Numbered from the stretch's first letter, positions 2 through 37,815 are shown. The stretch: 64,000 nt of DNA from IMGVR_UViG_3300031857_000005:186001-250000, one strand, 5' to 3'. A program made the numbers and translations. Notes: generated by a model from the sequence alone, not told the origin.

Positions 2-2095
2 GAATTAAAAATCGCATTAAACGTTGGTGATATATTATATTCGGCAGGAACTGGAACCGACTCAACTGTAAGAGTAGACAATGGAAATTTTGCAAATGGT
101 AACTGCTCAATTGTTGCTGGAGGAAGTGGAAATATTAGTGATAGTCAATATTCAACAATCGGTGGTGGATGTAATAACACAATAAATAATTTTACAACAA
201 ATTCTAACTATTATTCGGTAGTTGGGAATTTAATTGGTGGGGGTAATCGTAATACAATTGATTCTAATACGTTAAATGATGCCGATGTTGGTGGATCAGT
301 AATTGGTGGTGGTTATGTAAATCAATTGATTTCACCTTTTTATGGTTTCAACACGGTTAATGGTGGGGTTTTAAATAGAACATTTTTTGATTATAGTACA
401 ATTGGTGGTGGAGCAATCAATGTTAACTTAGATTCGTTTACAACAATCGGTGGTGGAGCATTTAATACAAACTCAAGTTATACATCAACAATCGGTGGTG
501 GTAATAATAATACAATTGGAACTTTATCTTCTTATTATAATGATCCTATTATTGGTCAAACTATAGGTGGTGGATCTTGTAATACAATGTCATCTTATAG
601 TGCTCAGTATTATAATGGTGGTAGTACAATTAGTGGTGGATATTGTAACACAACAGTTTCTTCATATTATGGAGGGCAAACTATATCAGGAGGGTTTAAT
701 AATATAACATCAAGTGATTATGCAACAGTTGGTGGAGGGGTTAGAAACACATCAAGTGGTTATTATTCAACTGTAAGTGGTGGGATTAACAATACATCAA
801 GTTGTGGTGGTTCATTTATTGGTGGTGGTTGTAACAACACATCAAGTTGTAATTATTCTACCGTAAGTGGAGGTTATAGAAATACATCAAGTTGTTGTAA
901 TTCAACAATAGGTGGTGGTAGAAGTAACACAGTAAGTTCTTGTTATTCAACTGTTAGTGGGGGTCGTAACAACGTATCCGGAATTAGCGGAACTATATCA
1001 GGAATTTATGATCAAACATATAATGGAGGAACATTTAGTGGTTATTATGGGTCATATTCACCAACCTCAACATCTTCAGGGTTTGGTAATGGAGGAACAT
1101 TCTCATTTAATTTTAATACGGGAACATTGTCTAACGTTTATGTTAACACAATTGGTCAAAGTTATGTTCAAGGAGATACGTTATTATTTGACGGTACTTT
1201 ATTTGGTGGATCAAGTGGTACTGATGATGTGACAATTAAAATTAATGTGACATCAAGTGGTAATAATTCTACCGTAAGTGGAGGTTATTGTAATACATCA
1301 ATTGGTAGTAGTTCAACAGTAAGTGGTGGTAAAAGAAACACATCAAGTGGTAGTTATTCAACAATTGGAGGTGGTAATGTTAACACATCAAGTTGTTATT
1401 ACTCAACCGTTGGTGGTGGTAGAAATAACACGTCAAGCGATTATTGTTCAACCATTGGTGGTGGTTTTAATAATAAAATTAATCCAGCATCATCCGATAG
1501 TGGTACTATATACGCATCAACAATAGGAGGAGGATCTTGTAATACAATCGGAACATTATCGGCATATTATGATGTATATGGTGCAACAATAGGTGGGGGA
1601 ACTTGTAATACAGTTGGGACATTATCCTCTTATTGTGGTGTGTATAGCTCAACAATTGGTGGAGGTTCCTTTAATATAATATCATCCTACAGTGGATACT
1701 ATGAAATGTATGGTAATACAATAGCTGGTGGTACTTTTAATACAACGGTATCTTCAGAATACAACGGACAAACAATTGGTGGAGGTCGTGGTAATGTAAC
1801 AAGGTATAATTATTCAACTGTAAGTGGGGGTAGAACTAACACATCAAGTGGTTATTATTCAACAATTGGTGGTGGTATAAATAACACATTAATAAATGGT
1901 TGTTCGGCAATACTTGGAGGAATATGTAATACGTCACAACACGATTGTTCATTTATTGTTGGTAGTGGTATATGTAGTACTGCCGCAAACACAACACACG
2001 TAAATTGTCTACATTTCAGTAACATACCTACATCGTCAGCAGGACTTGCACCAGGTACTGTATATAGTGATTCGTGTGTATTAAAAATAGTATAA
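2..2095 (+). CDS. Gly/Ser/Thr-rich beta-repeat fibre/adhesin-like virion protein (5' end lies outside the window)
   Basis: Frame is open from base 2 (ELKIALNVGDILYSAGTG...), so the TTG at 326 is not the true start. About 15-aa repeats S-T-[IV]-[GS]-G-G-x-x-N-T (YadA/AIDA-like beta-roll). C-terminal IPTSSAGLAPGTVYSDSCVLKIV resembles common phage fibre termini. Confidence 0.7.
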   Translation, partial: ELKIALNVGDILYSAGTGTDSTVRVDNGNFANGNCSIVAGGSGNISDSQYSTIGGGCNNTINNFTTNSNYYSVVGNLIGGGNRNTIDSNTLNDADVGGSVIGGGYVNQLISPFYGFNTVNGGVLNRTFFDYSTIGGGAINVNLDSFTTIGGGAFNTNSSYTSTIGGGNNNTIGTLSSYYNDPIIGQTIGGGSCNTMSSYSAQYYNGGSTISGGYCNTTVSSYYGGQTISGGFNNITSSDYATVGGGVRNTSSGYYSTVSGGINNTSSCGGSFIGGGCNNTSSCNYSTVSGGYRNTSSCCNSTIGGGRSNTVSSCYSTVSGGRNNVSGISGTISGIYDQTYNGGTFSGYYGSYSPTSTSSGFGNGGTFSFNFNTGTLSNVYVNTIGQSYVQGDTLLFDGTLFGGSSGTDDVTIKINVTSSGNNSTVSGGYCNTSIGSSSTVSGGKRNTSSGSYSTIGGGNVNTSSCYYSTVGGGRNNTSSDYCSTIGGGFNNKINPASSDSGTIYASTIGGGSCNTIGTLSAYYDVYGATIGGGTCNTVGTLSSYCGVYSSTIGGGSFNIISSYSGYYEMYGNTIAGGTFNTTVSSEYNGQTIGGGRGNVTRYNYSTVSGGRTNTSSGYYSTIGGGINNTLINGCSAILGGICNTSQHDCSFIVGSGICSTAANTTHVNCLHFSNIPTSSAGLAPGTVYSDSCVLKIV

Positions 2096-2396: not shown

Positions 2397-3140
2397 ATGT
2401 TTGTAACTGTATGTAATAAAGAATATCTTATTGGTTTTGAGGTAATGTTAAAATCTCTTGTGGAGAATAACCCAAGAGTTATTGAGGAAGATATCCCATT
2501 CACAATTATTAGTAATGATTTAACATCAGATGATTTAATAGTTGCGAGAAAAATTCATAATAATATTTCATTAAAAACCTATGATTCATCAAAATATTAT
2601 GAAATTGATGAGTTAAAAAAACAACAGATGTCGTTTGGTGATTACGCCAAATATGAAATATTTTCTATTGAGGATGTTGATAAAATCATATTTCTTGATT
2701 CCGATACTTTAATATTAGGGAACATTGATAGATTAATTGACTCTGATTATAATTTTGGTGCTGTTAGAGAATTGTATATTGACCAATACAATACCGGAGT
2801 AATAGTCATTTCAAAGAAATATTTAAACCCTAAAATCACAAATGATTTAATCAATTTAACAAAAGTTTATGGAATAACTGAACATTCCGATCAGGATATT
2901 ATAAATCATTACTTTGAAGACGTTATTAAAGATTTCCCAATTGAATATAATTTTTTAAAAACATACAATAAAAAAGTATTCCAAAACACAGGGTTACCTA
3001 AGTACATCAAAATATTACACTACATAGTTAAAAAACCTTGGCAACAAAAAGAATTAGTGTCTTTAGAAGAAGGGACTTTATGGACTGAAAGATATTGGTT
3101 TGATTATTATTCAAAAATACTTAAACTAAAAAATGATTAA
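2397..3140 (+). CDS. glycosyltransferase family 8
   Basis: IIFLDSDTLI (DxD), YNTGVIVI, SDQDIIN, YNF, ILHYIVKKPW motifs. Confidence 0.85.
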   Translation: MFVTVCNKEYLIGFEVMLKSLVENNPRVIEEDIPFTIISNDLTSDDLIVARKIHNNISLKTYDSSKYYEIDELKKQQMSFGDYAKYEIFSIEDVDKIIFLDSDTLILGNIDRLIDSDYNFGAVRELYIDQYNTGVIVISKKYLNPKITNDLINLTKVYGITEHSDQDIINHYFEDVIKDFPIEYNFLKTYNKKVFQNTGLPKYIKILHYIVKKPWQQKELVSLEEGTLWTERYWFDYYSKILKLKND

Positions 3141-4041
3141 AAGACATTACGATAAAAGTGAGTTATTAAACTACGTTGAGTTAGATAAGGATACAACAAC
3201 ATTAGAGAATAAAGTAATATTATTACATTTAGATTCTTTTTGTTTGGGGGATACTATTTGTTTTGCGTCATTTATTGATTCATTTATAGATTACCACAAC
3301 CCAAAAAAAGTTATTGTATCCACATTTTTTCCTCATTTATTAATATCAAATAATGAAAAATGTGAAATTATTAACGCCAATCAACAAAAAAAATTAACAA
3401 TAGATAAATTAATTGATGTTGGTTATGATAAAAATAATATGTCACATACTTTGGGTGGTATGTTGTATGCAACCAAAGATACAATGATGATACCACAATC
3501 AACCGAACCAAAAAAACCAACATTAATACCAAAATTTAAAAACGTTAAATCAAATAAAATAACTATTGCTCCCGAATCATTAAAATCAATTGCTCAATGG
3601 GATAGAGATGGTTGGCAGTTAGTTGTTGATTCTTTGGTTAATTCTGGTTTTGAGGTTTTTAATGTCTCTTACGAAGATACATTAAAATTAAATAATGTTA
3701 AAGGATATCACGGATTTGATGATATCAACGTCTCGTTAAATCACATATTAGAATCAAGATTGTTTATTGGGCTATCTTCGGGATTATCTTGGTTGGCATG
3801 GGCGTATGATGTTCCAGTTGTTATGATTTCAGGTTTTACAAAAGAACACAATGAATTTGATTGTTTTAGAGTTATTAATAAAAACGTTTGTAATGGGTGT
3901 TTTAATTTATTTCCAAATATTAGCACTAAATGTCCGATATTTTTAAATACAGAAAGAGAAAACGAATGTCATAAAAAAATAACACCAAAAATGGTTATAG
4001 AACAAATAAACAAGGCAATTATGTTTACAAACAATAAATAA
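3133..4041 (+). CDS. autotransporter O-heptosyltransferase-like (TibC/Aah, GT-B) glycosyltransferase
   Basis: LGDTICF; FIGLSSGLSWLAWAYDVPVVMISGFT; four-Cys cluster CNGC-x10-C-x11-C resembling the TibC iron finger. Confidence 0.75.
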   Translation: MIKRHYDKSELLNYVELDKDTTTLENKVILLHLDSFCLGDTICFASFIDSFIDYHNPKKVIVSTFFPHLLISNNEKCEIINANQQKKLTIDKLIDVGYDKNNMSHTLGGMLYATKDTMMIPQSTEPKKPTLIPKFKNVKSNKITIAPESLKSIAQWDRDGWQLVVDSLVNSGFEVFNVSYEDTLKLNNVKGYHGFDDINVSLNHILESRLFIGLSSGLSWLAWAYDVPVVMISGFTKEHNEFDCFRVINKNVCNGCFNLFPNISTKCPIFLNTERENECHKKITPKMVIEQINKAIMFTNNK

Positions 4042-4058
4042 AATATTATTATAAATTT

Positions 4059-4946
4059 ATGGAAAAAAAATATTCAATATTTCATATAGAAGGTGGGTTA
4101 GGAAAACATATATGTGCAACTGCGGTTGCAAAATGTATTAAGAATAATTTCCCTGAAAGAGAGTTGATTGTGGTATGTGCTTACCCTGAAATATTTTTAA
4201 ATTTAGAATTTATTGATAGAGTGTATAGAATTGGTAACACACCATATTTCTACGATGACTTCATTAATGATAAAGATTCAAAAATATTTAAACATGAACC
4301 TTATTTCACTGATGAACACATACATAAAAAATTACCTCTAATTGAGAATTGGTGCAAACTGTTTAATTTGAATTATTTAGGAGAGAAACCTGAATTAGTA
4401 TTTAATCTTAGGCAAAAACAAACAGGTATTAACAAATGGAAAAGAGATAAACCTGTGATGGTAATCCAAACAAACGGAGGACCCTTAAATGATCAACCTT
4501 ATCCATATTCTTGGACTAGAGATATTCCGTATGATGTTGCTCAACATTTAGTTAATTATTTTTCACCACAATATCACATAATTCAAATATGTAGAAATGA
4601 AAAAAATGCAATTGCAGGATGTGAAGTTATTACAGAACAAATGTCTAACATGGAATTGTTTTCACTATTGTTTATGTCTGAAAAAAGAATTTTAATTGAT
4701 TCTTGTTTGCAACACGCATCTGCGGCAATGGGAATACCATCAACTGTTTTATGGATAGGTACATCGCCAGTTATGTTTGGTTATAACACACACAAAAATA
4801 TTATTGCAAAATTACCTAACACGGTGAAATTACCTGATAGTTATTTGTTTGATTATAATTTTAATGGGTTAACACATGAATGTCCTTTAATAGATACCGA
4901 TATTTTTGATATCGACGAAATAATATATAATATAAATAATTTTTAA
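4059..4946 (+). CDS. GT9-like (GT-B fold) glycosyltransferase
   Basis: N-terminal IEGGLGKHICAT; C-terminal LIDSCLQHASAAMGIPSTVLW matches the GT9 DSG..H.A.A.G.P motif. Confidence 0.7.
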   Translation: MEKKYSIFHIEGGLGKHICATAVAKCIKNNFPERELIVVCAYPEIFLNLEFIDRVYRIGNTPYFYDDFINDKDSKIFKHEPYFTDEHIHKKLPLIENWCKLFNLNYLGEKPELVFNLRQKQTGINKWKRDKPVMVIQTNGGPLNDQPYPYSWTRDIPYDVAQHLVNYFSPQYHIIQICRNEKNAIAGCEVITEQMSNMELFSLLFMSEKRILIDSCLQHASAAMGIPSTVLWIGTSPVMFGYNTHKNIIAKLPNTVKLPDSYLFDYNFNGLTHECPLIDTDIFDIDEIIYNINNF

Positions 4947-4947
4947 T

Positions 4948-5769
4948 ATGGTAGAAAAGATATTTTTTCAAAGCTCATTACCAAGAGCTGGTTCAACATT
5001 ATTACAAAACATAATGGGGCAAAATCCTGATTTTTATGTTACACCAACTTCAGGTGTTTTAGAACTTGTATATGCCGCAAGAAACAATTACACTAACTCG
5101 CCTGAATTTAAGGCTCAAGATTCTAAATTAATGAAAGATGGGTTCATATCATTTTGTAAAAATGGTATGGAGGGATTTTTTAATGGTGTAACAGATAAAC
5201 CTTATGTTTTAGATAAAAGTAGAGGGTGGGGAGTTCACTATGGTTTTTTAAATTCTTTTTATCCTGAACCTAAAATAATTTGTATGGTTAGAGATCCAAG
5301 ATCAATTTTTGCGTCAATGGAGAAAAATTTTAGGAAAAGTCAACATTTAGATTCAGGATTGGTTAATCATGCTCAAATGGCAGGAACAACGACTGAAAAG
5401 AGAATTGATATATGGGCTCAATCACAACCTGTTGGTTTGGCTTTAGAAAGATTACAACAAATTTTTAGAGAAGGGGTAAACGACAAAATATTGTTTGTTA
5501 GATTTGAGGATTTAACCTCAAGTCCTAAAACAGAAATAGAAAGAATTTATACCTATTTAGGATTACCGTATTATGAAGGTCATGACTTTAATAACGTAAC
5601 TCAAATTACAAAAGAAGATGATTCAATTTATGGTATTTACGGTGATCATGTCATTAAACAACGAATAGAACCTACCAAAAAAGATTATCGGGATATCTTA
5701 GGTGATGATGCTTCTAATTGGATAAAAAACAGATACAAATGGGTATTTAATCAATTTGGTTATTTTTAA
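4948..5769 (+). CDS. PAPS-dependent sulfotransferase
   Basis: 5'-PSB motif SSLPRAGSTLL; 3'-PB motif MVRDPRSIFAS; VRFEDL. Confidence 0.85.
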   Translation: MVEKIFFQSSLPRAGSTLLQNIMGQNPDFYVTPTSGVLELVYAARNNYTNSPEFKAQDSKLMKDGFISFCKNGMEGFFNGVTDKPYVLDKSRGWGVHYGFLNSFYPEPKIICMVRDPRSIFASMEKNFRKSQHLDSGLVNHAQMAGTTTEKRIDIWAQSQPVGLALERLQQIFREGVNDKILFVRFEDLTSSPKTEIERIYTYLGLPYYEGHDFNNVTQITKEDDSIYGIYGDHVIKQRIEPTKKDYRDILGDDASNWIKNRYKWVFNQFGYF

Positions 5770-5774
5770 TTATT

Positions 5775-6233
5775 ATGGAGAATAAAATTTATTGGTTTAC
5801 CGGTCAGCCAGGTGCGGGAAAGACAGTTTTGTCTTTAATGTTAAAAACGGTTTTAGAACTTGACAATAGTAATAAAGTATTTCATATTGATGGAGATGAA
5901 TTAAGAAGTCTTTTTAATAATCAAAAATACGGTAGAGAAGGTCGTGAAGAGAATATAAAACGAGCACAAGATATTGCTAAATTTATATTAGCTCAAGGAC
6001 ATAGTGTTGTTGTTAGTTTGGTTGCACCATACAAAGAACTTAGAGAAAGTCTTAAACAAGAGTTGGGTAATTTGCTTGTTGAGTTTTATGTTCACACTAC
6101 AGATATTAGAGGTAGAGAACATTTTCACACCGACGAATATGAAAAACCAACAGAAAATTATTTAGATATTAATACAACTAATGTTGACCCACAAATATCA
6201 CTAAACCAAATAATAGAACACATTTCAAAATGA
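5775..6233 (+). CDS. cysC: adenylyl-sulfate (APS) kinase
   Basis: WFTGQPGAGKT P-loop, IDGDELR, R.ENI.R, VSLVAPY, YEKP. Confidence 0.9.
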   Translation: MENKIYWFTGQPGAGKTVLSLMLKTVLELDNSNKVFHIDGDELRSLFNNQKYGREGREENIKRAQDIAKFILAQGHSVVVSLVAPYKELRESLKQELGNLLVEFYVHTTDIRGREHFHTDEYEKPTENYLDINTTNVDPQISLNQIIEHISK

Positions 6234-6694
6234 ATTGGGAAGTAAAAAATCACGGAGGAGAACCTACAACAAACGAAAGTAAAAAATATGCAATATTTGT
6301 TGGTAGATACCAACCATACCATTATGGACATATTGAGTTAATACAACAAAAATTAAATCAAGGAATTCCTGCTCTTATTATGGTTAGGGATATTGAACCT
6401 GACGAAAAAAATCCATTTACCACTGAACAAACGGTAAAGATGATTGAGGAATATCATAACTCAAAAGGTGATGATGTTAAAGTTGTTATTATTCCTGATA
6501 TTGAATCTGTTAATTACGGTAGAGGTGTTGGGTATGAAATAAATGAATTCACACCACCAGATAATATTGGATTCATATCTGCAACAGGAATAAGAAACTC
6601 AATTGCTAAAGGTGACGACAAATGGAAAGATATGGTGGACGAATCAATACAAGATTATATAATTAATTTTTTAACATATGCAAATACAAAGTAA
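6230..6694 (+). CDS. small HIGH-superfamily nucleotidyltransferase (NadM/Sat-like; candidate minimal ATP sulfurylase)
   Basis: GRYQPYHYGH (HxGH) and ISATGIR motifs; ATGA overlap with cysC. Confidence 0.7.
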   Translation: MNWEVKNHGGEPTTNESKKYAIFVGRYQPYHYGHIELIQQKLNQGIPALIMVRDIEPDEKNPFTTEQTVKMIEEYHNSKGDDVKVVIIPDIESVNYGRGVGYEINEFTPPDNIGFISATGIRNSIAKGDDKWKDMVDESIQDYIINFLTYANTK

Positions 6695-7118
6695 AACTTA
6701 TCAAATCAGATTTAACACAGATTCAAAAACTGATGATGAAAGATGGAGATTAATTGAAAACGGTAACGAGACATTAGTTTCAGACATCATTATTGATGGA
6801 CACACTCAAACAACTAAAGATTGGTTACCGGAAATTAATGATTATAAATGGCATGTTAGTTGTGTTGGTTATTGTAGTATTGAGAATAATGTTGCATATA
6901 TAAAAACCATAAAAGAAGAATCTGTATTAATTAGACATATTTTAAAAACAGTTAGTTATAGATTTTTAGGAACCTTAACTACAGTTGTTGTTGCATATTC
7001 GTTAGGGGCAACAATTGAGGTTTCGGCATTGCTTGGTGTTGGTGAACTTATTATGAAACCATTTATATATTTTGGTCACGAAAGATTGTGGTATAAATAT
7101 ATAAGAATTAAAAAATAA
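6678..7118 (+). CDS. N-terminal small beta domain fused to a DUF2061-like membrane domain
   Basis: C-terminus RHILKTVSYRFLGTLTTVVVAY...ELIMKPFIYFGHERLW matches DUF2061 as I recall it; two hydrophobic helices. Confidence 0.7.
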   Translation: MQIQSKTYQIRFNTDSKTDDERWRLIENGNETLVSDIIIDGHTQTTKDWLPEINDYKWHVSCVGYCSIENNVAYIKTIKEESVLIRHILKTVSYRFLGTLTTVVVAYSLGATIEVSALLGVGELIMKPFIYFGHERLWYKYIRIKK

Positions 7119-7146
7119 CTTTCTTTCATTGTATTTATAAGATACA

Positions 7147-7641
7147 ATGGAGCAATCAATTACTATACAAAGTATTAATTATGACGGTGAACTTGCTAAT
7201 ATCTTATTTAAACCAGATATTAGCGAAACCGTATATAATTTAGGTGATCAGTTTTTACCTTTTGTGTTTAATTCAAACACAATTAACCCTAATTTAGAAG
7301 TATTTGGGACATATACTATATTAATTTTATTTAATAAATGCCCATATTTTTTAAATGTCCCAAGACTTACTCCTACACCGACACCTACAAATACGCCAAC
7401 TAGAACACCAACACCTACACCAACACCTACGATTACACCTACACCTACGTTCGATCCTTGTAAGGTACCAACACCAACACCAACGGTTACTACAACGCCT
7501 ACGATTACACCTACAAATACACCAACTCCAAGTGTGACTTGTACAAATCCTTGTGGTTGTCCTGAACCAAGTAAAACACCAAAACCAAGTAAAACACCAA
7601 AACCGACACCTACTTGTACAAGTCCTTGTGGTTGCCCATAA
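7147..7641 (+). CDS. Pro-Thr repeat (mucin-like) virion-associated protein with Cys-rich C-terminus
   Basis: Long (PT)n tract; CTNPCGCP and CTSPCGCP motifs; TATTTATA motif upstream. Confidence 0.7.
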
Positions 7642-7694
7642 ACAATTTAATTTTTGATTAAATGTTTTATTGTATTTATATAATGTAATTTAAA

Positions 7695-9632
7695 ATGATA
7701 CATCAAATTTCAATAACAGGAGTAACAGGAACTCCACCATATTCAATATCGGTATGTGATTCAACATACACATATTGTTATTTGGTTACAGGTTCAACAA
7801 CAATACCACCAACATTTACTTTTGATGTTCCATCACCTTTAGATGGAGTTAATAATTTAATTGTAAAAATAACTGATTCTACAGGATGCGAATACTTTGA
7901 ACCTTATAGTTGTCCTCCTACACCGACACCAACACCTACTCTAACACCGACACCAACACCTACCCCAACCGATTTGTGTTATTGTTTAATGGCAGTTAAT
8001 TCATCCATGATGGATGGTTCGTTTGATTATATAGATTGTGATGGATTATCACAATTAAATATTCATGTCCCAAGTGGAATAACATATTATACTTGTGGAT
8101 CTAACCCGACAAACATAATTAATTTATCAATCGGAATAGGTGATTTATGTTCTTTATCCAGTTGTAATCCACCTTTACCTTCATTATCGGCAACACCAAC
8201 TCCTACTCCCACACCTTCGTCATTACCTTTTGCGTTTATTTCAGTTTGGTCGGCATCAACTACAATTGAACTTCCGTATTCACCAACTGGAACTTATTCA
8301 GGAATAATAGATTGGGGTGATGGTAATACATCTGTTAACTCATATGCAAATAGAACTCATACATATTCGATAACAGGTGATTATACTGTAACAATTACAG
8401 GTACAATTGAGGGTTGGGATTTTAATAATTATGCGACATCTTATAAAAACAATATAAAAGAAATATTAAGGTGGGGTCCACTAAAAGGAGAATCAGGTTC
8501 AAACAATGGCATGTTCTATGGTTGTCAAAATTTAATTATAACAGGTGTAACAGATACTATTAATTTAATTGGAATAACAAATTTGAGTAGTATGTTTTTT
8601 GGTTGTACTAGTTTAACTACCGTAAATAATATGGATAGTTGGGATGTATCATCTGTTAATAATATGTCGGGTATGTTTACATTGACATCTAATTTCAATC
8701 AACCAATAGGAAGTTGGGATGTTTCAAATGTTACAAATATGGCATCTATGTTCTCGTTATCCACAAACTTTAACCAAAACATCGGAAGTTGGGATGTTTC
8801 AAACGTTACCAATATGTTGGCTATGTTTTTAGCCGCGGCAAATTTCAATCAACCAATAGGAGGATGGGATGTTTCAAATGTTATCAATATGTCAGCTATG
8901 TTCGCAGGTTCTCAAAATTTCAATCAACCAGTAGGAAGTTGGGATGTTTCAAATGTTACCAATATGTCGTCTATGTTTGGTAATGCAACAAACTTCAATC
9001 AGACAATTGGGGGTTGGGATGTGTCAAATGTTACCAATATGGGTAATATGTTTGGTAATGCAACAAACTTTAACCAAAACATCGGAAGTTGGGATGTTTC
9101 AAATGTTACCGATATGAATGGTATGTTTTTATCGGCAATAAACTTTAACCAAAACATCGGAAGTTGGGATGTTTCAAATGTTACCGTTATGAATGGTATG
9201 TTTAATAATGCTACAAGTTTTAACAATGGAGGTTCTCCAAGTATAAATTTATGGAATGTTTCAGGTGTGACAAATATGTCATTTACTTTTTATACCGCAA
9301 CAAATTTCAATCAACCAATAGGAGGATGGGACGTATCTAATGTAACAAATATGGAAAATATGTTATCATTGGCAACAGTTTTTGATCAACCAATCGGAGG
9401 ATGGGATGTTTCATCAGTAACTAATATGAGTTTTATGTTAAATGGTACGTCATTATCAACACCTAATTATGATTTACTACTCAATGGATGGGCATCATTA
9501 GGAGGTTCATTACAACCCTCAGTTAATTTTAATGCCGGTACTTCTGTATATACGATTGCAACGGCTGGTGTGAGTAGAAATTATTTGACAGGAACCAAGT
9601 TATGGAATATAACTGACGGGGGAGGAATTTAA
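7695..9632 (+). CDS. virion decoration/adhesin: PT linkers, PKD-like domain and BspA/DUF285 26-aa surface repeats
   Basis: (PT)n tracts; IDWGDG..HTYS..G.YTVTITG PKD-like motif; repeats FNQ[PN]IGxWDVSNVTNMxxMF. Confidence 0.85.
   Translation: MIHQISITGVTGTPPYSISVCDSTYTYCYLVTGSTTIPPTFTFDVPSPLDGVNNLIVKITDSTGCEYFEPYSCPPTPTPTPTLTPTPTPTPTDLCYCLMAVNSSMMDGSFDYIDCDGLSQLNIHVPSGITYYTCGSNPTNIINLSIGIGDLCSLSSCNPPLPSLSATPTPTPTPSSLPFAFISVWSASTTIELPYSPTGTYSGIIDWGDGNTSVNSYANRTHTYSITGDYTVTITGTIEGWDFNNYATSYKNNIKEILRWGPLKGESGSNNGMFYGCQNLIITGVTDTINLIGITNLSSMFFGCTSLTTVNNMDSWDVSSVNNMSGMFTLTSNFNQPIGSWDVSNVTNMASMFSLSTNFNQNIGSWDVSNVTNMLAMFLAAANFNQPIGGWDVSNVINMSAMFAGSQNFNQPVGSWDVSNVTNMSSMFGNATNFNQTIGGWDVSNVTNMGNMFGNATNFNQNIGSWDVSNVTDMNGMFLSAINFNQNIGSWDVSNVTVMNGMFNNATSFNNGGSPSINLWNVSGVTNMSFTFYTATNFNQPIGGWDVSNVTNMENMLSLATVFDQPIGGWDVSSVTNMSFMLNGTSLSTPNYDLLLNGWASLGGSLQPSVNFNAGTSVYTIATAGVSRNYLTGTKLWNITDGGGI
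8590..9440 (+). repeat. tandem 78-bp (26-aa) DUF285 repeats, about 11 units
   Basis: Near-identical units, e.g. aaactttaaccaaaacatcggaagttgggatgtttcaaa near 8765, 9065 and 9141. Confidence 0.85.
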
Positions 9633-9679
9633 AAACATTTATTGAGTTTTATTTTTATTTTTTTATTATTAAAATAAAA

Positions 9680-10927
9680 ATGAAAATTTTCATCCAAATC
9701 GCTTCTTATAGAGATCCCCAACTTATACCAACAATTAAAGATTGTATTGATAAATCAAAAAAACCTGAAAATTTAAGATTTGGTATTTGTAGACAATTTC
9801 ATCCTGAAGATGGTTTTGATAATTTAACAGAATATGAGAATGATGATAGATTCAGAATTTTAAATATTCCATATCAAGAATCAACAGGCGTGTGTTGGGC
9901 AAGAAACCAAGTACAACAATTATATAAAGGAGAAAAATACACTCTACAGTTAGATTCTCATATGAGATTTGAACAAGATTGGGATGATACTTTAATTAAA
10001 ATGATTAAAGGATTACAAAAGAATGGCTATAAAAAACCATTATTAACTGGTTATGTCTCATCATTTGATCCTGAAAATGATCCTCAAGGTAGGGTTACCG
10101 ATCCGTGGAGAATGACATTTGATAGATTTACACCTGAAGGTGTTGTATTCTTTTTACCTGAAGTAATTCCTAATTGGAGGGAATTTAGTGAACCAATACC
10201 TTCAAGATTTTACTCCGCACATTTTGCATTTACATTAGGGGAGTTTTCTAAAGAAGTTCAACATGATCCTGAATACTATTTTCACGGTGAAGAAATTTCA
10301 ATTGCAGTAAGAGCATACACTCATGGATATGATTTATTTCATCCACATAGAGTTGTTATTTGGCACGAATACACAAGGAAGGGTAGAACTAAACAATGGG
10401 ACGATGATAAAGAGTGGTATAAAAAAAACGAATCTTGTCATAAAAAGAATAGACAAATACTTGGTATTGATGGAGAATCTTATGAAGGGGATTTAGGTAA
10501 ATATGGTTTTGGTACCGAAAGGACAATTAGAGATTATGAAAAATATTCAGGTATCCTATTTTCTAAAAGAGCAATACAACAATATACAATAGATAAAAAT
10601 TATCCTCCTAATTCATACGATTATGAAACTGAAGAACAATGGTTAGATAGTTTTACAACAATATTCAAACATTGTATTGATATATCATTTGATGGAGTTC
10701 CTGAAAATGATTACGATTTTTGGGTTGTTGCATTTCATAATGAAAAAGATGAAACTTTATTTAGACAAGATGCCGACTCAAACGAAATAAATAGAATGAT
10801 GCAAGATCCTGACAGATACTGTAAAATATGGAGAGAATTCCACACAAAAGAAAAACCTAAGTATTGGGTTGTGTGGCCGTATAGTAAATCAAAAGGATGG
10901 TGTCCAAGATTAACAGGTAATTTATAA
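9680..10927 (+). CDS. GT60 / GlcNAc-transferase family protein (Skp1-hydroxyproline/polypeptide alpha-GlcNAc transferase-like)
   Basis: IFIQIASYRDP, G.CWAR, LQLDSHMRF (DSH), FHGEE, AYTHGYD, WHEY motifs. Confidence 0.8.
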   Translation: MKIFIQIASYRDPQLIPTIKDCIDKSKKPENLRFGICRQFHPEDGFDNLTEYENDDRFRILNIPYQESTGVCWARNQVQQLYKGEKYTLQLDSHMRFEQDWDDTLIKMIKGLQKNGYKKPLLTGYVSSFDPENDPQGRVTDPWRMTFDRFTPEGVVFFLPEVIPNWREFSEPIPSRFYSAHFAFTLGEFSKEVQHDPEYYFHGEEISIAVRAYTHGYDLFHPHRVVIWHEYTRKGRTKQWDDDKEWYKKNESCHKKNRQILGIDGESYEGDLGKYGFGTERTIRDYEKYSGILFSKRAIQQYTIDKNYPPNSYDYETEEQWLDSFTTIFKHCIDISFDGVPENDYDFWVVAFHNEKDETLFRQDADSNEINRMMQDPDRYCKIWREFHTKEKPKYWVVWPYSKSKGWCPRLTGNL

Positions 10928-10932: not shown

Positions 10933-11643
10933 ATGGTAACATTTAATGATGTAAAAATAGCTGATGTTGGGTATTATATAAATTTGGATAGTAGGGTTGA
11001 CAGAAAAGATAACCTTGAGTCACAGTTTAATAAATTTAACATAAAGGGGGTTAATAGATTTTCGGCATTTTCAAGTTACCCAAGTAATCCCTCAAATTGT
11101 AAAAAAAGTCATTATCAATTATTTGAATTGTTTTTACAATCAAATTACAATACTATGTTAGTATTAGAAGATGATTGTAAGTTTTTAGATTTTTTAAAGG
11201 ATGAGTCAACCGAAATTTTTGATAAAATTTTAAATACTGATTGGGATTTATTTTGGTTAGGATGTAGAAATAGAAAACCACCAAAAAATTATATTAATAA
11301 TTGTTATTTTACCTCATCAACTTCCGGAGCTCAATCTTACATTATAACAAAAAGATTTGTTGAGTATCTATTATCTACTTTCCCTATTGAACCTAACGAT
11401 AATTTAAGGAACACATCAATTGATGAACTACTGTGTTTATCAATATATGATATTGATGTGGTTAATAACCCAAATAAATATAATTTTTATAATTTAGATC
11501 AACCTTTAGATAATCTACAAACTAAATTTAAATCATTGTGTTATGAAAAGGCACTTACAACACAATATCTTTCATATAGTGATTTATGGGGTACTACTAC
11601 CGATTTAGAATATTATATGATATCATCACACCCAAAACAATAA
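10933..11643 (+). CDS. glycosyltransferase family 25
   Basis: YYINLDSRVDRK, CKKSH, LVLEDD, AQSYII motifs. Confidence 0.8.
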   Translation: MVTFNDVKIADVGYYINLDSRVDRKDNLESQFNKFNIKGVNRFSAFSSYPSNPSNCKKSHYQLFELFLQSNYNTMLVLEDDCKFLDFLKDESTEIFDKILNTDWDLFWLGCRNRKPPKNYINNCYFTSSTSGAQSYIITKRFVEYLLSTFPIEPNDNLRNTSIDELLCLSIYDIDVVNNPNKYNFYNLDQPLDNLQTKFKSLCYEKALTTQYLSYSDLWGTTTDLEYYMISSHPKQ

Positions 11644-11647: not shown

Positions 11648-12241
11648 ATGAACGGACACTTTATTTACAAAAATTTAATTATTAGTCAACATCCAAATGT
11701 TGGGGAAAAGTTTAAAACACTTATTGACGAATACAAACCATCAAGAGTTTTAGAAATAGGAACTGCGGATGGCGGATTAACATTATTAATAAGAGATTTA
11801 TTAGATAGTGTGGGATTAACTAATACAATAGTACGAACTTATGATGTTAATGAACAAAAAAATTTAAAGTTAAAAGAAAGAAATATTGAGATAATCACAA
11901 AAGATGTTTTTAATTATCCATATTCAGATTTAGAATATCCTGATGAAATCAGAGACTTTATACAAAGTAATGGTAAAACTTTAGTTCTTTGCGATGGAGG
12001 GAGTAAAAAAAATGAATTTAGATTATTATCTCAATTTTTAAAATATGGTGATATTATTATGGCTCACGATTATGCACCAAATGAAAATTATTTTAATGAA
12101 AATATAAAAGATAAAATATGGAATTGGTTAGAAATACAAGATTTTGATATTAATGAAAGTTGTTTAACTTATAATCTTAAACCATATATGGAAGATGAAT
12201 TTCGTTCTGTTGTATGGGTATGTAAAATAAAAGAACAATGA
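11648..12241 (+). CDS. class I SAM-dependent methyltransferase (CmcI/sugar O-methyltransferase-like)
   Basis: VLEIGTADGG motif I; LVLCDGG; IIMAHD. Confidence 0.75.
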   Translation: MNGHFIYKNLIISQHPNVGEKFKTLIDEYKPSRVLEIGTADGGLTLLIRDLLDSVGLTNTIVRTYDVNEQKNLKLKERNIEIITKDVFNYPYSDLEYPDEIRDFIQSNGKTLVLCDGGSKKNEFRLLSQFLKYGDIIMAHDYAPNENYFNENIKDKIWNWLEIQDFDINESCLTYNLKPYMEDEFRSVVWVCKIKEQ

Positions 12242-13920
12242 TTACATTAGTAACTGGTTTATGGGATATTGGTAGAGGTGATTTACAGGAAGGTTGGTCA
12301 CGATCATATCAACACTATTTAGGTAAGTTTGAAGAACTACTAAAAGTAGATAGTAACCTTATTATTTTTGGTGATAAAGAGTTACAAGATTTTGTATCTC
12401 AAAGAAGACAGGTTGAAAACACTCAATTTATTTTGAGGGATTTGAATTGGTTTAAAAATAACGAATATTTCCAATTAATACAAACTATACGAACAAATCC
12501 TGATTGGTTTAACCAAGTTGGGTGGTTAAAGGACTCAACTCAATCTAAATTAGAAATGTATAACCCTTTGGTTATGTCTAAAATGTTTTTACTTAATGAT
12601 GCAAAAATTTTAGATAAATTTAATTCAGATAAACTATTTTGGGTTGATGCCGGTTTAAGTAATACCGTACATATGGGTTATTTTACGCATGATAAAGTTA
12701 TGGATAAAATAGATAAATTATCTGACAAATTTTTATTTATTTGTTTTCCATATAACGCAGAAACTGAAGTTCATGGATTCAAGTATGAAGAAATGAAACG
12801 ATTAACAAACTCAACACCTGATATTGTTGCTCGCGGAGGATTCTTTGGTGGGGATAAGGATTTAATATCACAAATGAATAGTTTGTATTATGGGATATTA
12901 ATTGACACCCTTAAACGAGGTTTTATGGGTACTGAAGAAAGTTTATTTACAATATTAACATACCAATACCCTAACATAATTGATTACTGTGAAATAGAAT
13001 CTAATGGATTAGTTTATAAATTTTTTGAGGATGTTAAAAACAATTTAGTTGTAATAAAAAACTTTGACTCAAAACCAACAATCGTTAAAACTAATTTAGA
13101 AATTAACTCAAATGGGATTGGTTTATATATTATAACATTTAATTCACCAAATCAATTTGAGACATTAATCCAATCAATGTTGAACTATGATACTGATTTT
13201 ATCACAAGAACCAAAAAGTTTTTACTTGATAATTCAACAGATACATCAACAACCCCAAGGTATTTGGAACTTTGTGAACAATATGGTTTTACTCACATAA
13301 AAAAAGATAATATTGGTATAACTGGTGGAAGACAATTTATTGCGGAACATTTTAATGAACAAGAAGATTTAGGTTATTATTTCTTCTTTGAGGACGATAT
13401 GTTATTTCACTCAGGTAAAACCGATGTGTGTAAAAATGGTTTTGGTAGGTATGTTAAAAAACTATTTACCAAATCTTTAAACATACTAAAAAGAGAATCT
13501 TTTGATTTCTTAAAATTAAATTTTACAGAATTTTATGGTTCTAATGATAAACAATGGTCTTGGTATAATGTTCCCCAAGATTTTAGACAATCCCATTGGC
13601 AGAACAATCCAAGGTTACCACAACAAGGGTTGGATCCAAATTCACCAAACACAGAATTCAAATATATTAAATCATTACAGGGGTTACCATATGCGAGTGG
13701 AGAAATCTATTTGTGTAACTGGCCGATTCTAATGTCAAAAGAAGGTAATTATAAGTGTTATTTAAAAACAAAATTTGATCATCCATTTGAACAAACTTTA
13801 ATGTCCCAATGTTTCCAAGAAACCATTAAGGGTAATATCAATCCGGGTTTATTATTAATAACCCCAACTGAACACAATCGTTTCGATCATTATGAATCCT
13901 CATTAAGAAAAGAATGTTAA
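12238..13920 (+). CDS. HtrL/YibB-like domain fused to a GT-A (GT2-like) domain
   Basis: N-terminal TLVTGLWDIGR, FWVDAG, GGFFGG, TEESL; C-terminal domain with GITGGR and YFFFEDD. Confidence 0.7.
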   Translation: MITLVTGLWDIGRGDLQEGWSRSYQHYLGKFEELLKVDSNLIIFGDKELQDFVSQRRQVENTQFILRDLNWFKNNEYFQLIQTIRTNPDWFNQVGWLKDSTQSKLEMYNPLVMSKMFLLNDAKILDKFNSDKLFWVDAGLSNTVHMGYFTHDKVMDKIDKLSDKFLFICFPYNAETEVHGFKYEEMKRLTNSTPDIVARGGFFGGDKDLISQMNSLYYGILIDTLKRGFMGTEESLFTILTYQYPNIIDYCEIESNGLVYKFFEDVKNNLVVIKNFDSKPTIVKTNLEINSNGIGLYIITFNSPNQFETLIQSMLNYDTDFITRTKKFLLDNSTDTSTTPRYLELCEQYGFTHIKKDNIGITGGRQFIAEHFNEQEDLGYYFFFEDDMLFHSGKTDVCKNGFGRYVKKLFTKSLNILKRESFDFLKLNFTEFYGSNDKQWSWYNVPQDFRQSHWQNNPRLPQQGLDPNSPNTEFKYIKSLQGLPYASGEIYLCNWPILMSKEGNYKCYLKTKFDHPFEQTLMSQCFQETIKGNINPGLLLITPTEHNRFDHYESSLRKEC

Positions 13921-13956: not shown

Positions 13957-14373
13957 ATGGAATTCTACATTAAAAAAAATGCAACTCTTCCTGTTTTAAA
14001 GATACAAGTTGTAAAAGACGGAAGAAGTGATTATAATAATTTTATGGAGATGATTGAGGAATCTGCCATATTTTTTTCTATGGTAAATGTAGAAACTGGT
14101 ATCCCTAAAATAACAACAAGACCCGCAGGATTTGTGGAAAAAATTCAAATAGAACCAAACGCAACTCCCGAATATTATATCTACTATAGATTTACCTCAA
14201 AAGACACAAGTAAAGTTGGTAGATATGAAGCACAATTCTTATTGAGAAATAATGACGGAACTTTAATTTTACCAATAAGAGAAAGATTATTTATAAATGT
14301 CCAAGAGAGTTATATTGCGGATGATTTATTATATCAAAATCCTTATATAGTAGATTTCCCTTGTTGTGGGTAA
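13957..14373 (+). CDS. small Ig-like virion protein (BppU N-terminal-like)
   Basis: beta-rich; YYRFTSKDTSKVGRYEAQF pattern; late motif upstream. Confidence 0.5.
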   Translation: MEFYIKKNATLPVLKIQVVKDGRSDYNNFMEMIEESAIFFSMVNVETGIPKITTRPAGFVEKIQIEPNATPEYYIYYRFTSKDTSKVGRYEAQFLLRNNDGTLILPIRERLFINVQESYIADDLLYQNPYIVDFPCCG

Positions 14374-14465: not shown

Positions 14466-17399
14466 ATGATATCAGAAGAAGAAATTAAATCCTTCTTAGA
14501 AGGTGCCGACCCAGAACAATTCATAGTGTCGGTAGAGTATGATTACGCTGCTAATTGCGTTTATAAAATCAAAGAAACACCAGGAAAAGGAAAATCAATA
14601 CATAAAGAATCTTTTAGTTCTTTTGGTTGGGTAGGTGACTTGCGTGGTATGAATTTTTACCAAGGTTCTAAAGAATTACAAAAAGAGGCAATGACTAAAT
14701 ACGGTATTATCATTGAGAAACTAAGGACTGATGGTAATGAAAGATTAGAAAATGGACTAACATTCTTAGTTAAATCAATCAAAGGATATAGAGAACTAAT
14801 TCAATTTTTTAGAGACGGTGGTATAGATCCTTGGGGTGAAAAAACCAAAGATAAAATAATGATTCTACCTCCTGTAGAACAATACCTCATCTCAAAAGAA
14901 AAACGACTATTTAAAGGATTTGAAGAATACAATGATATTACAAGACTTGTATTTGACTTGGAGACGACTGCTTTAGAACCTAAAGACGGTCGTATTTTTA
15001 TGATTGGAATTAAGACAAATAAGGGACACTTAAAAGTAATTGAGTGTAAAGATGCTGACGAAGAAAGACGAGGTATCGTTGAATTTTTCAGAATCATAGA
15101 TGAGATAAAACCTTCAATCATTGGGGGTTACAACTCAGCAAACTTTGACTGGCATTGGATTTTTGAGAGATGTAAAGCTCTTAACATTGACTTAAAGAAA
15201 ATCCCAACCTCATTAAACCACTCAAAACCTATTGCACAAAAAGAGTCAATGTTAAAATTGGCAAATGAAGTTGAGCGATATAACCAAGTACAAATGTGGG
15301 GATACAATGTTATTGATATCATCCATTCAGTTCGTAGAGCTCAAGCAATCAACTCAAGTATTAAAGAGGCGGGACTTAAATATATTACCAAATATATTGA
15401 TGCCGAAGCGAAAGATCGTATTTACATCGATCACACAAAAATTGGTCCGATGTATGCAAACAAGGACGAATATTGGTTAAATACCGAAAACGGTAAATAC
15501 AAGAAGGTTGGTGTTGATCAAAAAATTGATGAGGTATGTTTTAGACGAGGTGACATTTATCTTAAAACCACAGGTGATAACATTGTTGAGAGATATCTTG
15601 ACGATGACTTGGAGGAAACCTTAATTGTTGACGATGAATTCAATCAAGGATCATTCCTACTTGCATCACTACTCCCAACAACATATGAACGAGTATCAAC
15701 AATGGGTACCGCAACATTATGGAAAATGTTAATGTTAGCTTGGTCATATAAACATAAATTGGCGATACCTCAAAAACAAGAAAAAGGAAACTTTGTTGGT
15801 GGTTTATCAAGACTATTAAAAGTTGGGTATTCAAAAGATGTACTGAAACTTGACTACTCATCACTATACCCATCAATTCAGTTGGTTCACGATGTGTTTC
15901 CTGAATGTGATATAACAGGAGCAATGAAAGGATTATTAACTTACTTTAGAAATACTCGTATCAAGTATAAAAATTTGGCATCAGAATTTAAAAGTAAGGA
16001 TAAAAAACTTTCCTTATCTTACGATAGAAAACAATTACCAATTAAAATCTTTATCAACTCATTGTTTGGTGGTTTAAGTGCCCCACAAGTATTCCATTGG
16101 GGTGATATGAACAAGGGGGAACAGATTACCTGTACGGGTAGACAATATCTTAGACAGATGTTAAAATTCTTTAGTAAAAGAGGATATAGTCCTTTGGTGT
16201 GTGATACTGATGGTATGAACTTCTCATTGCCTGAAGGTGGTGTAGAAGATAGAGTATACATTGGTAAAGGATTAAATTGGTTGGTTAAGGAAGGTAAAGA
16301 ATATCGTGGTTATGATGCGGATGTTGCCGAGTTTAATGATTTATTTATGAGAGGTGCGATGGGTCTTGATTGTGACGGTACTTGGGATTCTTGTATTAAC
16401 TTAGCTCGTAAAAATTACGCAACTATGGAACAAAACGGTAAGATTAAACTTACAGGTAATAGTATCAAGTCCAAAAAGATGCCAAAGTATATTGAGAAGT
16501 TCTTGGATAAAGGGATTAAACAATTACTTAAAGGTGAGGGTAAAGAATTTATTGAGTGGTATTACGAATACATTCAAAAGATATTTGATCAAAAGATTCC
16601 TTTGGCGGAAATTGCGTCTAAAGCAAAAGTTAAATTGAGTGTTGATGATTACATTAAACGCAGTAAACAAACTACCAAGGCAGGTTCGTTGATGTCAAGA
16701 CAGGCACATATGGAACTTATTATAAGAGATGGGATTCAGTCAAATCTTGGTGATATGATTTTCTATGTGAATAACGGAACAAAGGCTTCACACGGAGATG
16801 TTCAGAAAGTTAATAAACCAAAGAAAGGGTGGACAGAAGAACAAATAAGTTTGTTCTTTTCGGATAGTTCAAAAAATAATTTAGATTATAAACAGAAAGA
16901 AAAATTTTTAATTAACAACGGTTGGGAAACTTCTTGGTCTGATGATAATTGGGTAAGAAGTGATTCACCGTACAAAGAAGCAAATACTGGTATACCGACA
17001 GATGTTGCATATAAAGTCGCTAGTTCAGATTCTGTTATACAACTTAATTGTTATCGTATTGAACCTTCGGATTTGGAAAACAATCCTGAGATGTTAGGTG
17101 AGTACAATATCCAAAGAGCGATTGCAACATTCAATAAACGAGTGGAACCTTTATTAATTGTTTTTGACGATGAGGTAAGAGATTCACTATTGGTTAAAAA
17201 TCCTGAAGATAGAAATTTCTATACAACAGAACAATGTAAATTGATTAATGGAAAACCATTCAGTCCTGAAGATCAAGATGATGTATATGAAAATCTATTA
17301 AAGATGGAACAAGGTGAGGTTGAATTTTGGAACCGTGTTGGTATCAACCCTGATTATATTTATGAGTTAGCAGATGAGGGATGGGAGGAGTTAATTTAA
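14466..17399 (+). CDS. family B DNA polymerase
   Basis: ExoI FDLETT, ExoII GYNSANFD, ExoIII YLDDD; motif A LDYSSLYPSI, motif B KIFINSLFG, motif C CDTDG. Confidence 0.95.
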   Translation: MISEEEIKSFLEGADPEQFIVSVEYDYAANCVYKIKETPGKGKSIHKESFSSFGWVGDLRGMNFYQGSKELQKEAMTKYGIIIEKLRTDGNERLENGLTFLVKSIKGYRELIQFFRDGGIDPWGEKTKDKIMILPPVEQYLISKEKRLFKGFEEYNDITRLVFDLETTALEPKDGRIFMIGIKTNKGHLKVIECKDADEERRGIVEFFRIIDEIKPSIIGGYNSANFDWHWIFERCKALNIDLKKIPTSLNHSKPIAQKESMLKLANEVERYNQVQMWGYNVIDIIHSVRRAQAINSSIKEAGLKYITKYIDAEAKDRIYIDHTKIGPMYANKDEYWLNTENGKYKKVGVDQKIDEVCFRRGDIYLKTTGDNIVERYLDDDLEETLIVDDEFNQGSFLLASLLPTTYERVSTMGTATLWKMLMLAWSYKHKLAIPQKQEKGNFVGGLSRLLKVGYSKDVLKLDYSSLYPSIQLVHDVFPECDITGAMKGLLTYFRNTRIKYKNLASEFKSKDKKLSLSYDRKQLPIKIFINSLFGGLSAPQVFHWGDMNKGEQITCTGRQYLRQMLKFFSKRGYSPLVCDTDGMNFSLPEGGVEDRVYIGKGLNWLVKEGKEYRGYDADVAEFNDLFMRGAMGLDCDGTWDSCINLARKNYATMEQNGKIKLTGNSIKSKKMPKYIEKFLDKGIKQLLKGEGKEFIEWYYEYIQKIFDQKIPLAEIASKAKVKLSVDDYIKRSKQTTKAGSLMSRQAHMELIIRDGIQSNLGDMIFYVNNGTKASHGDVQKVNKPKKGWTEEQISLFFSDSSKNNLDYKQKEKFLINNGWETSWSDDNWVRSDSPYKEANTGIPTDVAYKVASSDSVIQLNCYRIEPSDLENNPEMLGEYNIQRAIATFNKRVEPLLIVFDDEVRDSLLVKNPEDRNFYTTEQCKLINGKPFSPEDQDDVYENLLKMEQGEVEFWNRVGINPDYIYELADEGWEELI

Positions 17400-19992: not shown

Positions 19993-20020
19993 TAACAATA
20001 AATATCTTCAAATGAAAGTT

Positions 20021-37813: not shown

Positions 37814-37815
37814 TT

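Follow-up and report, generated by a model that had tools for sequence, protein, structure and literature searches.

The present study concerns a segment of the 64,000-nucleotide stretch IMGVR_UViG_3300031857_000005:186001-250000 (hereafter the window), in which two genes for proteins with Pro-Thr (PT) repeats, here named PT_A and PT_B, lie directly upstream of a gene for a glycosyltransferase (GT) of family GT60 (Table 1). The window corresponds to bases 265-64264 of a 118,616-bp IMG/VR viral record estimated to be 40% complete; a relative of 304,365 bp, rated complete, carries a copy of the enzyme that is 100% identical in a matching gene order, and the source is a freshwater jumbo phage of the myovirus type with a genome of about 304 kb. 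The three open reading frames (ORFs) are on the plus strand and are separated by 53 nt (PT_A to PT_B) and 47 nt (PT_B to GT60). No terminator-like site was found in these spacers in a promoter and terminator scan whose counts equalled those of shuffled sequences and which is uninformative if other promoter types are used. PT_A consists of an N-terminal domain of 73 aa and about 90 aa of (PT)n and PSKTPK tract with CxC motifs, such that residues 74 to about 164 (nt ~7366-7641) are P/T-rich nearly throughout; it has no Pfam match. PT_B consists of a 72-aa immunoglobulin (Ig)/fibronectin type III (FN3)-like N-terminal domain with four Cys (the N-domain), two PT linkers at residues 74-92 (nt 7914-7971) and 166-174 (nt 8190-8217), and DUF285 (BspA-like) repeats. 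The tracts thus lie in the ORF map where an earlier note on this DNA had placed them. Tracts of at least three PT or TP units occur in 5 of the 102 ORFs of the 118.6-kb record, including three further PT proteins encoded elsewhere (the distal PT proteins), compared with 0.10 on average and at most 2 among 500 within-protein shuffles, and the PT tracts are therefore beyond chance. The hexamer DNA repeats underlying the tracts agree by only 68-72%, and this variation of codons suggests constraint on the protein and not slippage of the DNA. By eye, neither a leader peptide nor a membrane segment is seen at the N-termini of GT60, PT_A and PT_B, and the enzyme and both PT proteins would therefore share a compartment.

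Table 1. Features of the window discussed in the text
Feature	Position (nt)	Strand	Evidence and remarks
Fibre-like repeat protein	2-2095	+	cut at window start (771 aa in the full record); upstream border of the island
GT8 glycosyltransferase	2397-3140	+	PF01501, E 1.9e-21; candidate glycan extender
TibC/Aah-like (GT9-fold) protein O-heptosyltransferase homologue	3133-4041	+	TIGR04414 hepto_Aah_TibC, E 2.5e-35
295-aa protein	4059-4946	+	unknown; first gene of the sulfation cassette; travels with the next four genes
Sulfotransferase	4948-5769	+	PF13469, E 3e-23; weak NoeE-like match
Adenylyl-sulfate (APS) kinase, making 3'-phosphoadenylyl sulfate (PAPS)	5775-6233	+	PF01583, E 5e-19; NCBIfam apsK, E 1e-18 to 2e-19, below cut-offs
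HIGH-motif nucleotidyltransferase, like nicotinamide mononucleotide (NMN) adenylyltransferase (NMNAT)	6230-6694	+	PF01467, E 1e-7; NMN adenylyltransferase models, E 6e-14, below cut-offs
DUF2061 membrane protein	6678-7118	+	PF09834, E 1e-12; last gene of the cassette
PT_A	7147-7641	+	164 aa; candidate acceptor; ORF map
PT_B	7695-9632	+	645 aa; candidate acceptor, variable-cargo slot; DUF285, E 2e-106
N-domain of PT_B	7695-7919	+	72 aa
Tandem array in the DUF285 region of PT_B	8624-9185		75 nt (25 aa), ~7.5 copies, 76% identity
GT60 (GT-A glycosyltransferase)	9680-10927	+	415 aa; PF11397; candidate initiating polypeptide O-N-acetylhexosamine (HexNAc) transferase
GT25 glycosyltransferase	10933-11643	+	PF01755, E 2e-9, 37.9 bits (cut-off 24); candidate extender
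CmcI/rhamnosyl O-methyltransferase-like protein (weak)	11648-12241	+	PF04989, E 1e-3, below cut-off
HtrL_YibB domain with GT2-like C-terminal half	12238-13920	+	560 aa; PF09612, E 5e-18
unk138	13957-14373	+	138 aa; PT-linker-extended homologues in many relatives (synteny table)
PolB	14466-17399		directly 3' of the island
Fe/Mn superoxide dismutase domain protein	18901-19998	-	domain at residues 169-357
Tail sheath	24682-28254		1,190 aa
Baseplate wedge	55679-57517

The identity of the GT60 enzyme is established by family, fold and motif. The ORF scores 241.8 bits (cut-off 21) with Pfam PF11397 ('GlcNAc'), at E 1.9e-71 over profile positions 94-349 and an N-terminal stretch, and corresponds to phrog_24687 (E 3e-170), in agreement with the GT60-like ORF of the earlier note. 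Across 47 aligned homologues, residues D92, H94 and H229 do not vary, the DxH motif being D92-S-H94, and the AlphaFold2 (AF2) model shows a GT-A fold with a predicted local distance difference test score (pLDDT) of 95.8. A sequence search against the PDB returned nothing (best E 0.8, T7 RNA polymerase). In fold searches, the top Swiss-Prot match was Dictyostelium Gnt1 (Q8T1C6; E 1.1e-25, template modelling (TM) score 0.65/0.64, 25% identity, residues 2-312), followed by dozens of polypeptide N-acetylgalactosamine (GalNAc)-transferases, and the first 44 PDB matches were all polypeptide GalNAc-transferases (E ~5e-10, TM ~0.5). The closest characterised and structural relatives are thus all polypeptide-glycosylating. 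The label "eukaryote-like" is misleading: the phage enzyme nests among Bacteroidota homologues at 66-69% identity, against 25% to Gnt1, the closest non-viral ones being in Saprospiraceae and Lewinellaceae assemblies (59-69% identity), and the label fits the characterised members only, because the family is large (4,722 representatives at 50% identity) and widespread in bacteria (Bacteroidota, Acidobacteriota, Verrucomicrobiota, Gemmatimonadota and Pseudomonadota). Members of GT60 are known to occur in prokaryotes, and GT60 and GT27 have in common the DxH motif and the way in which they O-glycosylate polypeptides on Ser/Thr (PMC7185993). A C-terminal beta domain (residues ~315-415), common to the bacterial homologues, lies outside the Gnt1 match. 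Some family members are giant (P0121-P0134 and P0142; up to 2,461 aa), with 2-4 stretches matching the GT60 query, and P0142 has a PT tract within its N-terminal 110 residues, before the GT60 domain.

In the phage's own clade, the enzyme and the candidate acceptor genes are coupled at the level of gene linkage. A close homologue of the enzyme is present in 366 viral contigs, the best 80 of which were analysed and then dereplicated. A PT tract was found in the gene immediately upstream of GT60 (position -1) at 30 of 49 loci and at position -2 in 10/43, compared with about 7% elsewhere and none at position +1 (0/51). With both upstream positions considered, the N-domain was present at 32 of 45 loci, a PT tract at 32 of 45, and a PT/mucin-like or N-domain gene at 39 of 45. 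Because these loci are related, p-values for position within the clade are not meaningful, and proportions and recurrence in a second lineage were used instead. In the reverse direction, a search starting from the N-domain placed GT60 at a distance of 0.2-4 kb downstream for some 60 of the 80 loci; the others are contigs ending shortly past the match or additional copies of the domain. The wider arrangement is a conserved block consisting of the PT_B family, GT60, 0-8 variable genes, HtrL, the unk138 family and PolB. Among relatives, PT linkers occur in three different flanking families (PT_A, PT_B and unk138), and the PT_A family is also found upstream of the island, mostly with PT tracts (synteny table). 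The enzyme itself is strongly kept (72-100% identity), and the neighbouring genes vary.

The genes upstream of GT60 range from 72 to 1,526 aa and have in common the 72-aa N-domain with four invariant Cys, followed by a PT linker and variable cargo. The conserved N-domain indicates one family with a hypervariable C-terminus and not many independent events. The domain family is virus-only and occurs as stand-alone genes of 72-100 aa and as the N-terminus of the PT-linker proteins. Its alignment (A2) has 11 invariant columns, the four Cys among them, and the AF2 model is a beta-sandwich (pLDDT 84), for which the fold search found only generic Ig/FN3 sandwiches (best E 0.04) and no evidence for a virion role. 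The N-domain resembles a conserved module for anchoring or recognition, to which variable cargo is joined. Eleven IMG/VR contigs (L232-L242) all terminate 2.1-2.9 kb past the start of the N-domain gene; it seems that assemblies break inside the variable PT gene, as would be expected if the slot is hypervariable or rich in repeats.

That phage genes of one kind adjoin two GT60 lineages is what argues most strongly for a functional link. A second viral clade (clade 3; 76 loci) carries a GT60 that is 40.6% identical to that of the present phage, in a different gene order, inside a fibre-like module and among homologues of the phage's distal PT and fibre-like genes. A typical locus of clade 3 encodes an SprB-repeat protein, a 95-aa N-domain protein, a collagen-repeat protein and GT60, followed by a 265-aa unknown protein and by Cys-rich PT, N-domain, fibre-like and SprB+PT proteins; between the Cys-rich PT protein and a distal PT protein of the phage, the identity is 34% (E 5e-21). 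The share of loci with a PT protein was 13/62 at position +1, 17/60 at +2 and 9/59 at -1, and none was found at +3 or +4 (0/59). In the maximum-likelihood tree, the GT60 of the own clade groups with Saprospiraceae and Lewinellaceae, that of clade 3 with Verrucomicrobiota, and that of XacN1-like phages with Burkholderiaceae and Neisseriaceae, so that bacterial lineages separate the first two viral ones. The approximately unbiased (AU) test rejected monophyly of the own-clade and clade-3 enzymes (lnL difference 296, p 3e-8), for a group chosen after the tree had been seen.

An association of this kind is also found in bacteria. Among 65 bacterial loci, mucin-like S/T/P ORFs were more frequent within three genes of the GT60 homologue (11/335) than further away (1/367; Fisher p 0.002), and strict PT tracts more frequent within two positions (9/232 compared with 5/470; p 0.019), and the PT tracts adjoin homologues of four phyla. 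At the closest bacterial locus (L087, Saprospiraceae), a GT60 homologue 68% identical to the phage enzyme is paired with an HtrL/GT2 protein of 56% identity, and its divergent neighbour (6504-7649, minus strand) encodes a protein sorted by the type IX secretion system (T9SS) with ten S/T/P-rich tandem repeats of ~14 residues, with a sulfotransferase alongside. It is possible that this locus is a host-side counterpart or source of the phage genes. The closest homologue in a cultured phage is that of the Xanthomonas jumbo phage XacN1 (ORF334, 48% identical), which, as in the present phage, lies near PolB and a GT9 gene (ORF328). At least two Schiff-positive bands of XacN1 virions were attributed by the authors to both GTs (PMC5852040). 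XacN1 has giant PT-bearing ORFs, one of which (ORF325) directly follows the baseplate wedge genes and precedes the GT9 gene by three genes.

In the present phage, the three genes are part of an island of 15 genes on one strand, extending from the window start to position 14373. Besides GT60, it encodes a second GT of the protein-directed type, the TibC/Aah-like protein, which the earlier note had overlooked. It matches TIGR04414 with 122 bits, below the equivalog cut-off of 200, and is therefore a homologue and not an equivalog; the match to lipopolysaccharide (LPS) heptosyltransferase I reaches only E 9e-4, and in a HMMER search the only PDB sequence matches are TibC structures (4RAP/4RB4, E 1.8e-16). 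Its four C-terminal Cys align with those of TibC 4RAP, which reportedly form an iron finger in the TibC structure. The phage protein is shortened (302 aa compared with 406 aa), and about 76 N-terminal positions of the model are missing. TibC and Aah glycosylate the repeats of adhesins on Ser in the cytoplasm. Thus, for two enzymes of the island, GT60 and the TibC/Aah-like protein, the nearest relatives that have been characterised are cytoplasmic glycosyltransferases of proteins, and the presence of the TibC/Aah-like protein strengthens the case for protein glycosylation; in some relatives, PT_B lies directly between these two genes. The GT25 and GT8 enzymes, which the earlier note had named as extenders together with a GT2, were confirmed. 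The GT2 was recovered only indirectly: along its entire length the HtrL_YibB protein shares 56% identity with a Saprospiraceae protein whose C-terminal half reaches Pfam GT2. This HtrL_YibB gene is a constant partner of GT60, on whose 3' side it lies in nearly all relatives. The five-gene sulfation cassette (4059-7118) moves among relatives as a unit and in both orientations; its 295-aa protein has no family match, and no ATP sulfurylase is recognisable. Neither the fibre-like protein (Pfam, PHROG) nor unk138 matched a known family.

Herein, we propose that the island glycosylates the phage's own fibre-like proteins, which we consider probable. First, the apparently soluble GT60, with its DxH metal site, would transfer the first sugar onto Thr/Ser of the PT linkers in the cytoplasm of the infected cell. 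By analogy with all GT60 members that have been characterised, this sugar would be a HexNAc donated by a UDP-sugar. The likely acceptors would be PT_A, PT_B and the distal PT proteins. Second, GT25, the HtrL/GT2-like protein and GT8 would extend the glycan, which might then be decorated by the methyltransferase-like protein and by the PAPS-making sulfation cassette. Third, the TibC/Aah-like enzyme might add heptose to Ser of repeat domains. The outcome would be extended, protease-shielded, mucin-like linkers on adhesin- or fibre-type proteins. For the more specific proposal that GT60 primes Thr/Ser of the PT linkers with HexNAc and that neighbouring enzymes extend it, the arguments appear to us evenly balanced, and the acceptor residue, the sugar, the extension steps and the biological benefit are given here as what the gene content would predict. 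The most far-reaching version is a widespread freshwater clade of jumbo phages with true mucin-like fibres that are GT60-primed, extended by GT25/GT8/GT2-like enzymes, O-methylated, sulfated with PAPS made by the phage and also heptosylated on repeat domains by a TibC-like enzyme, with different GT60 lineages having joined one kind of fibre module in separate phage clades; a sulfated pathway of several enzymes for protein glycosylation would then be encoded wholly by a bacteriophage. This version is in our opinion rather improbable.

Several observations weigh against this proposal. The linkage within the own clade is largely inherited synteny, and its counts are not independent. In XacN1-like phages, PT genes are absent up to two genes away from GT60. 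Only about 5-10% of the bacterial homologues have an S/T/P-rich neighbour, and the distal PT proteins of the phage are encoded about 70 kb from the GT60 gene. Similarity of fold is insufficient to fix the class of acceptor, and to our knowledge no bacterial GT60 member has been characterised and the acceptor is known for no prokaryotic or phage member. PT linkers are plain spacers in many unglycosylated proteins, and in five relatives GT60 is kept with only a linker-less N-domain gene of 72-101 aa at position -1. The last of these points also favours an alternative that we regard as unlikely, namely that the island does glycosylate fibre-like proteins while the PT tracts are plain spacers, common in proteins of this class, and GT60 acts elsewhere, on Ser/Thr in collagen-like G-T-S repeats, in the four-Cys N-domain, or in DUF285 or fibre repeats. 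Consistent with such acceptors, a collagen-repeat protein (Pfam Collagen, E 5e-9) is often encoded directly 5' of GT60 in clade 3, some clade-1 relatives have at -1 a gene that resembles collagen or fibre genes but lacks a strict PT tract, and the N-domain is regarded as the most constant neighbour in place of the PT tract, at equal counts of the two. However, the characterised enzymes of GT60 and GT27 favour Thr/Ser in Pro-rich, unstructured sequence (PMC7185993 and general knowledge of the family), and the PT tracts recur in three unrelated flanking families and beside bacterial homologues of four phyla. A complex prediction of GT60 with residues 1-110 of PT_B, run without controls, gave a score of 0.00 and argues neither for nor against binding.

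The assignment of PT_A and PT_B to the virion, which the earlier note made in calling them virion proteins, goes beyond observation, and the absence of any structural-family match to either protein in Pfam and PHROG counts against it; on the N-domain of PT_B, the distal PT proteins, unk138 and most of the large neighbouring ORFs, these two databases gave nothing useful. Gene content and position suggest that the PT proteins may be virion-associated. Further N-domain copies are located at G000 73069-73371 and G000 85179-85400 (minus strand), the second of which matches the PT_B N-domain by BLAST, and paralogues of the island's fibre-like protein (G000 73406-76513 and 77750-79201) flank the gene of a virion structural protein (phrog_1645). 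The N-domain and fibre-like paralogues and the distal PT proteins cluster around this phrog_1645 gene, downstream of the baseplate wedge gene, and PT_B itself contains adhesin-type modules, namely the DUF285 repeats and the Ig-like N-domain. By eye, neither PT_A nor PT_B bears a signal for secretion, which would also fit a virion role.

Remodelling of a host surface glycan (the LPS or lipooligosaccharide core, the capsule or some other polysaccharide), which might serve to prevent superinfection or re-adsorption, would make the PT genes unrelated cargo. The families characteristic of LPS-core synthesis include GT8, GT25 and HtrL, as well as the GT9 fold, and the GT60 homologue of the acidobacterial Tunturiibacter lichenicola (L154) is a divergent neighbour of ADP-heptose and LPS-core genes (a GT9 heptosyltransferase, HldE and an epimerase); both points favour this explanation over ours. 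It is also the usual interpretation of GT clusters in jumbo phages (PMC7824862). Nevertheless, the GT9-fold gene of the island resembles TibC/Aah far more than LPS heptosyltransferase I, the island genes scanned include no recognised flippase, polymerase or lipid-carrier enzyme, no other recognised GT family was found near the GT60 of the fibre-like module in the two clade-3 loci scanned, and the characterised members of GT60 and GT27 are all polypeptide-directed (PMC7185993). Host-glycan remodelling is thus improbable in our assessment. We consider it very unlikely that GT60 is a take-over or anti-defence effector acting on a host protein, with an incidental adjacency to the PT genes. The bacterial homologues include some in effector-type settings, between TssF and VgrG of a type VI secretion system (T6SS) cluster in a Ralstonia sp. 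(L127) and beside a C39-peptidase ATP-binding cassette (ABC) exporter in Sphingobacterium zeae (L132), and an enzyme so well kept among varying neighbours would also suit an effector; yet the repeated placement of PT and N-domain genes in two GT60 lineages, the extender GTs and the constant HtrL/GT2-like partner would be left unexplained. The acceptors of bacterial GT60 members may be diverse.

Glycosylation of phage DNA (hypermodified bases) by the island enzymes, as protection against restriction, appears extremely unlikely. PolB is located directly downstream of the island, GT60 is found near PolB also in XacN1-like phages, and phage GTs that glycosylate DNA are well known (as cited in PMC12619734). 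Against this, the sole thymidylate-synthase-family gene of the complete relative has, in our own reading of its sequence, a standard ThyA appearance with the uracil-specifying Asn and the usual C-terminus, and therefore no hydroxymethyl-pyrimidine pathway is evident. No member of GT60 or GT27 is known to act on DNA.

The proposed protein glycosylation can be compared with several known systems. Dictyostelium Gnt1 acts on Hyp143 (hydroxyproline) of Skp1, and GT60 enzymes of Dictyostelium and Trypanosoma cruzi start mucin-type O-glycans on Thr/Ser. The phage enzyme is of the same Pfam/CAZy family as Gnt1, has the DxH motif and, like Gnt1, appears not to be membrane-anchored, but the identity is only 25% and the C-terminal beta domain is an additional feature of the phage and bacterial enzymes. 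The PT-rich candidate acceptors of the phage resemble the Thr/Pro-rich acceptors of the protist mucin-type GT60 enzymes (PMC7185993 and general knowledge of the family). A Hyp acceptor of the Skp1 type is unlikely, since no 2-oxoglutarate (2OG)-Fe(II) oxygenase (PF13640, PF03171), that is, no prolyl hydroxylase, was found in the complete relative. The animal polypeptide GalNAc-transferases (GT27) likewise combine a GT-A catalytic domain bearing DxH with a C-terminal accessory beta domain; however, they are only 11-17% identical to the phage enzyme and, as type-II membrane proteins of the Golgi, carry a ricin-type lectin domain, whereas the phage enzyme is apparently soluble and its C-terminal domain is unrelated in sequence.

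Among phages, the established precedent is that of mycobacteriophages, whose GTs reportedly O-glycosylate the phages' own structural proteins in the host cytoplasm, as is said to have been shown experimentally by Freeman et al. in 2023 (cited in PMC12619734). These phages differ in having Actinobacteria as hosts and the C-termini of capsid and tail-tube subunits as acceptors, and in that their glycosylation was shown by experiment, whereas that of the present island is predicted from sequence. Cellular counterparts are the Gram-positive loci of serine-rich-repeat adhesins, in which GtfA/B act together with GT8/GT2 extenders, and of the spore-fibre protein BclA of Bacillus, whose collagen-like GPT repeats carry HexNAc-linked oligosaccharides. 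These resemble the island in yielding fibre or adhesin proteins and in that a low-complexity Ser/Thr(-Pro) acceptor gene is clustered with a cytoplasmic initiating HexNAc-transferase and extenders, and differ in having GT4-type initiators (GtfA/B) and in being cellular instead of viral.

The glycosylation of phage proteins by phage-encoded enzymes is thus already known from mycobacteriophages, with a hint from XacN1, and we know of no other phages in which glycosylation of the particle has been shown or hinted at. A literature search found no paper linking GT60 with phages. What appears to be new is the GT60-type initiator, the TibC-like second enzyme and the linked sulfation cassette, together with the candidate PT-linker acceptors as a conserved anchor with variable cargo and their recurrence with different GT60 lineages; the gene linkage is computationally well supported, and the glycosylation itself is plausible. 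If the proposal is correct, the phenomenon would extend to a very abundant group of jumbo phages in the environment (over 360 IMG/VR contigs; over 7,000 near homologues of the enzyme). In addition, the PT linkers would be the first acceptor class for prokaryotic or viral GT60, a family of more than 4,700 diverse representatives. An enzyme with a short PT acceptor tag would then constitute a compact cytoplasmic toolkit for mucin-type O-glycosylation, and there would be a bearing on the protease resistance of phage fibres and on the effects of a glycan coat on adsorption. With its conserved anchor, PT linker and variable cargo, this design points to a hypervariable slot for host interaction that is trackable in metagenomes.

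The host is probably a member of the Bacteroidota, and may belong to the Saprospiraceae, on the basis of the SprB-type repeats, of small domains structurally like T9SS sorting domains, and of the closest non-viral GT60 homologues. An aquatic group described as "moraphages", with four core GT groups and Bacteroidota hosts, may be a related lineage. Megablast of the island gave no matches, and in 50,697 phage records tblastn found none to an 812-aa PT protein or to unk138, indicating that there is no cultured close relative with a proteome. The phage has a GC content of about 31% and encodes an SNF2 helicase, DnaB, a UvsX-like recombinase and ribonucleotide reductase. Three very large ORFs (1,712, 2,319 and 1,754 aa; 32675-45088 and 57590-62854) have no PHROG matches. 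The tail sheath ORF is unusually long, and sheath families match only its last ~230 residues. The superoxide dismutase domain is preceded by an N-terminal extension of 165 aa.

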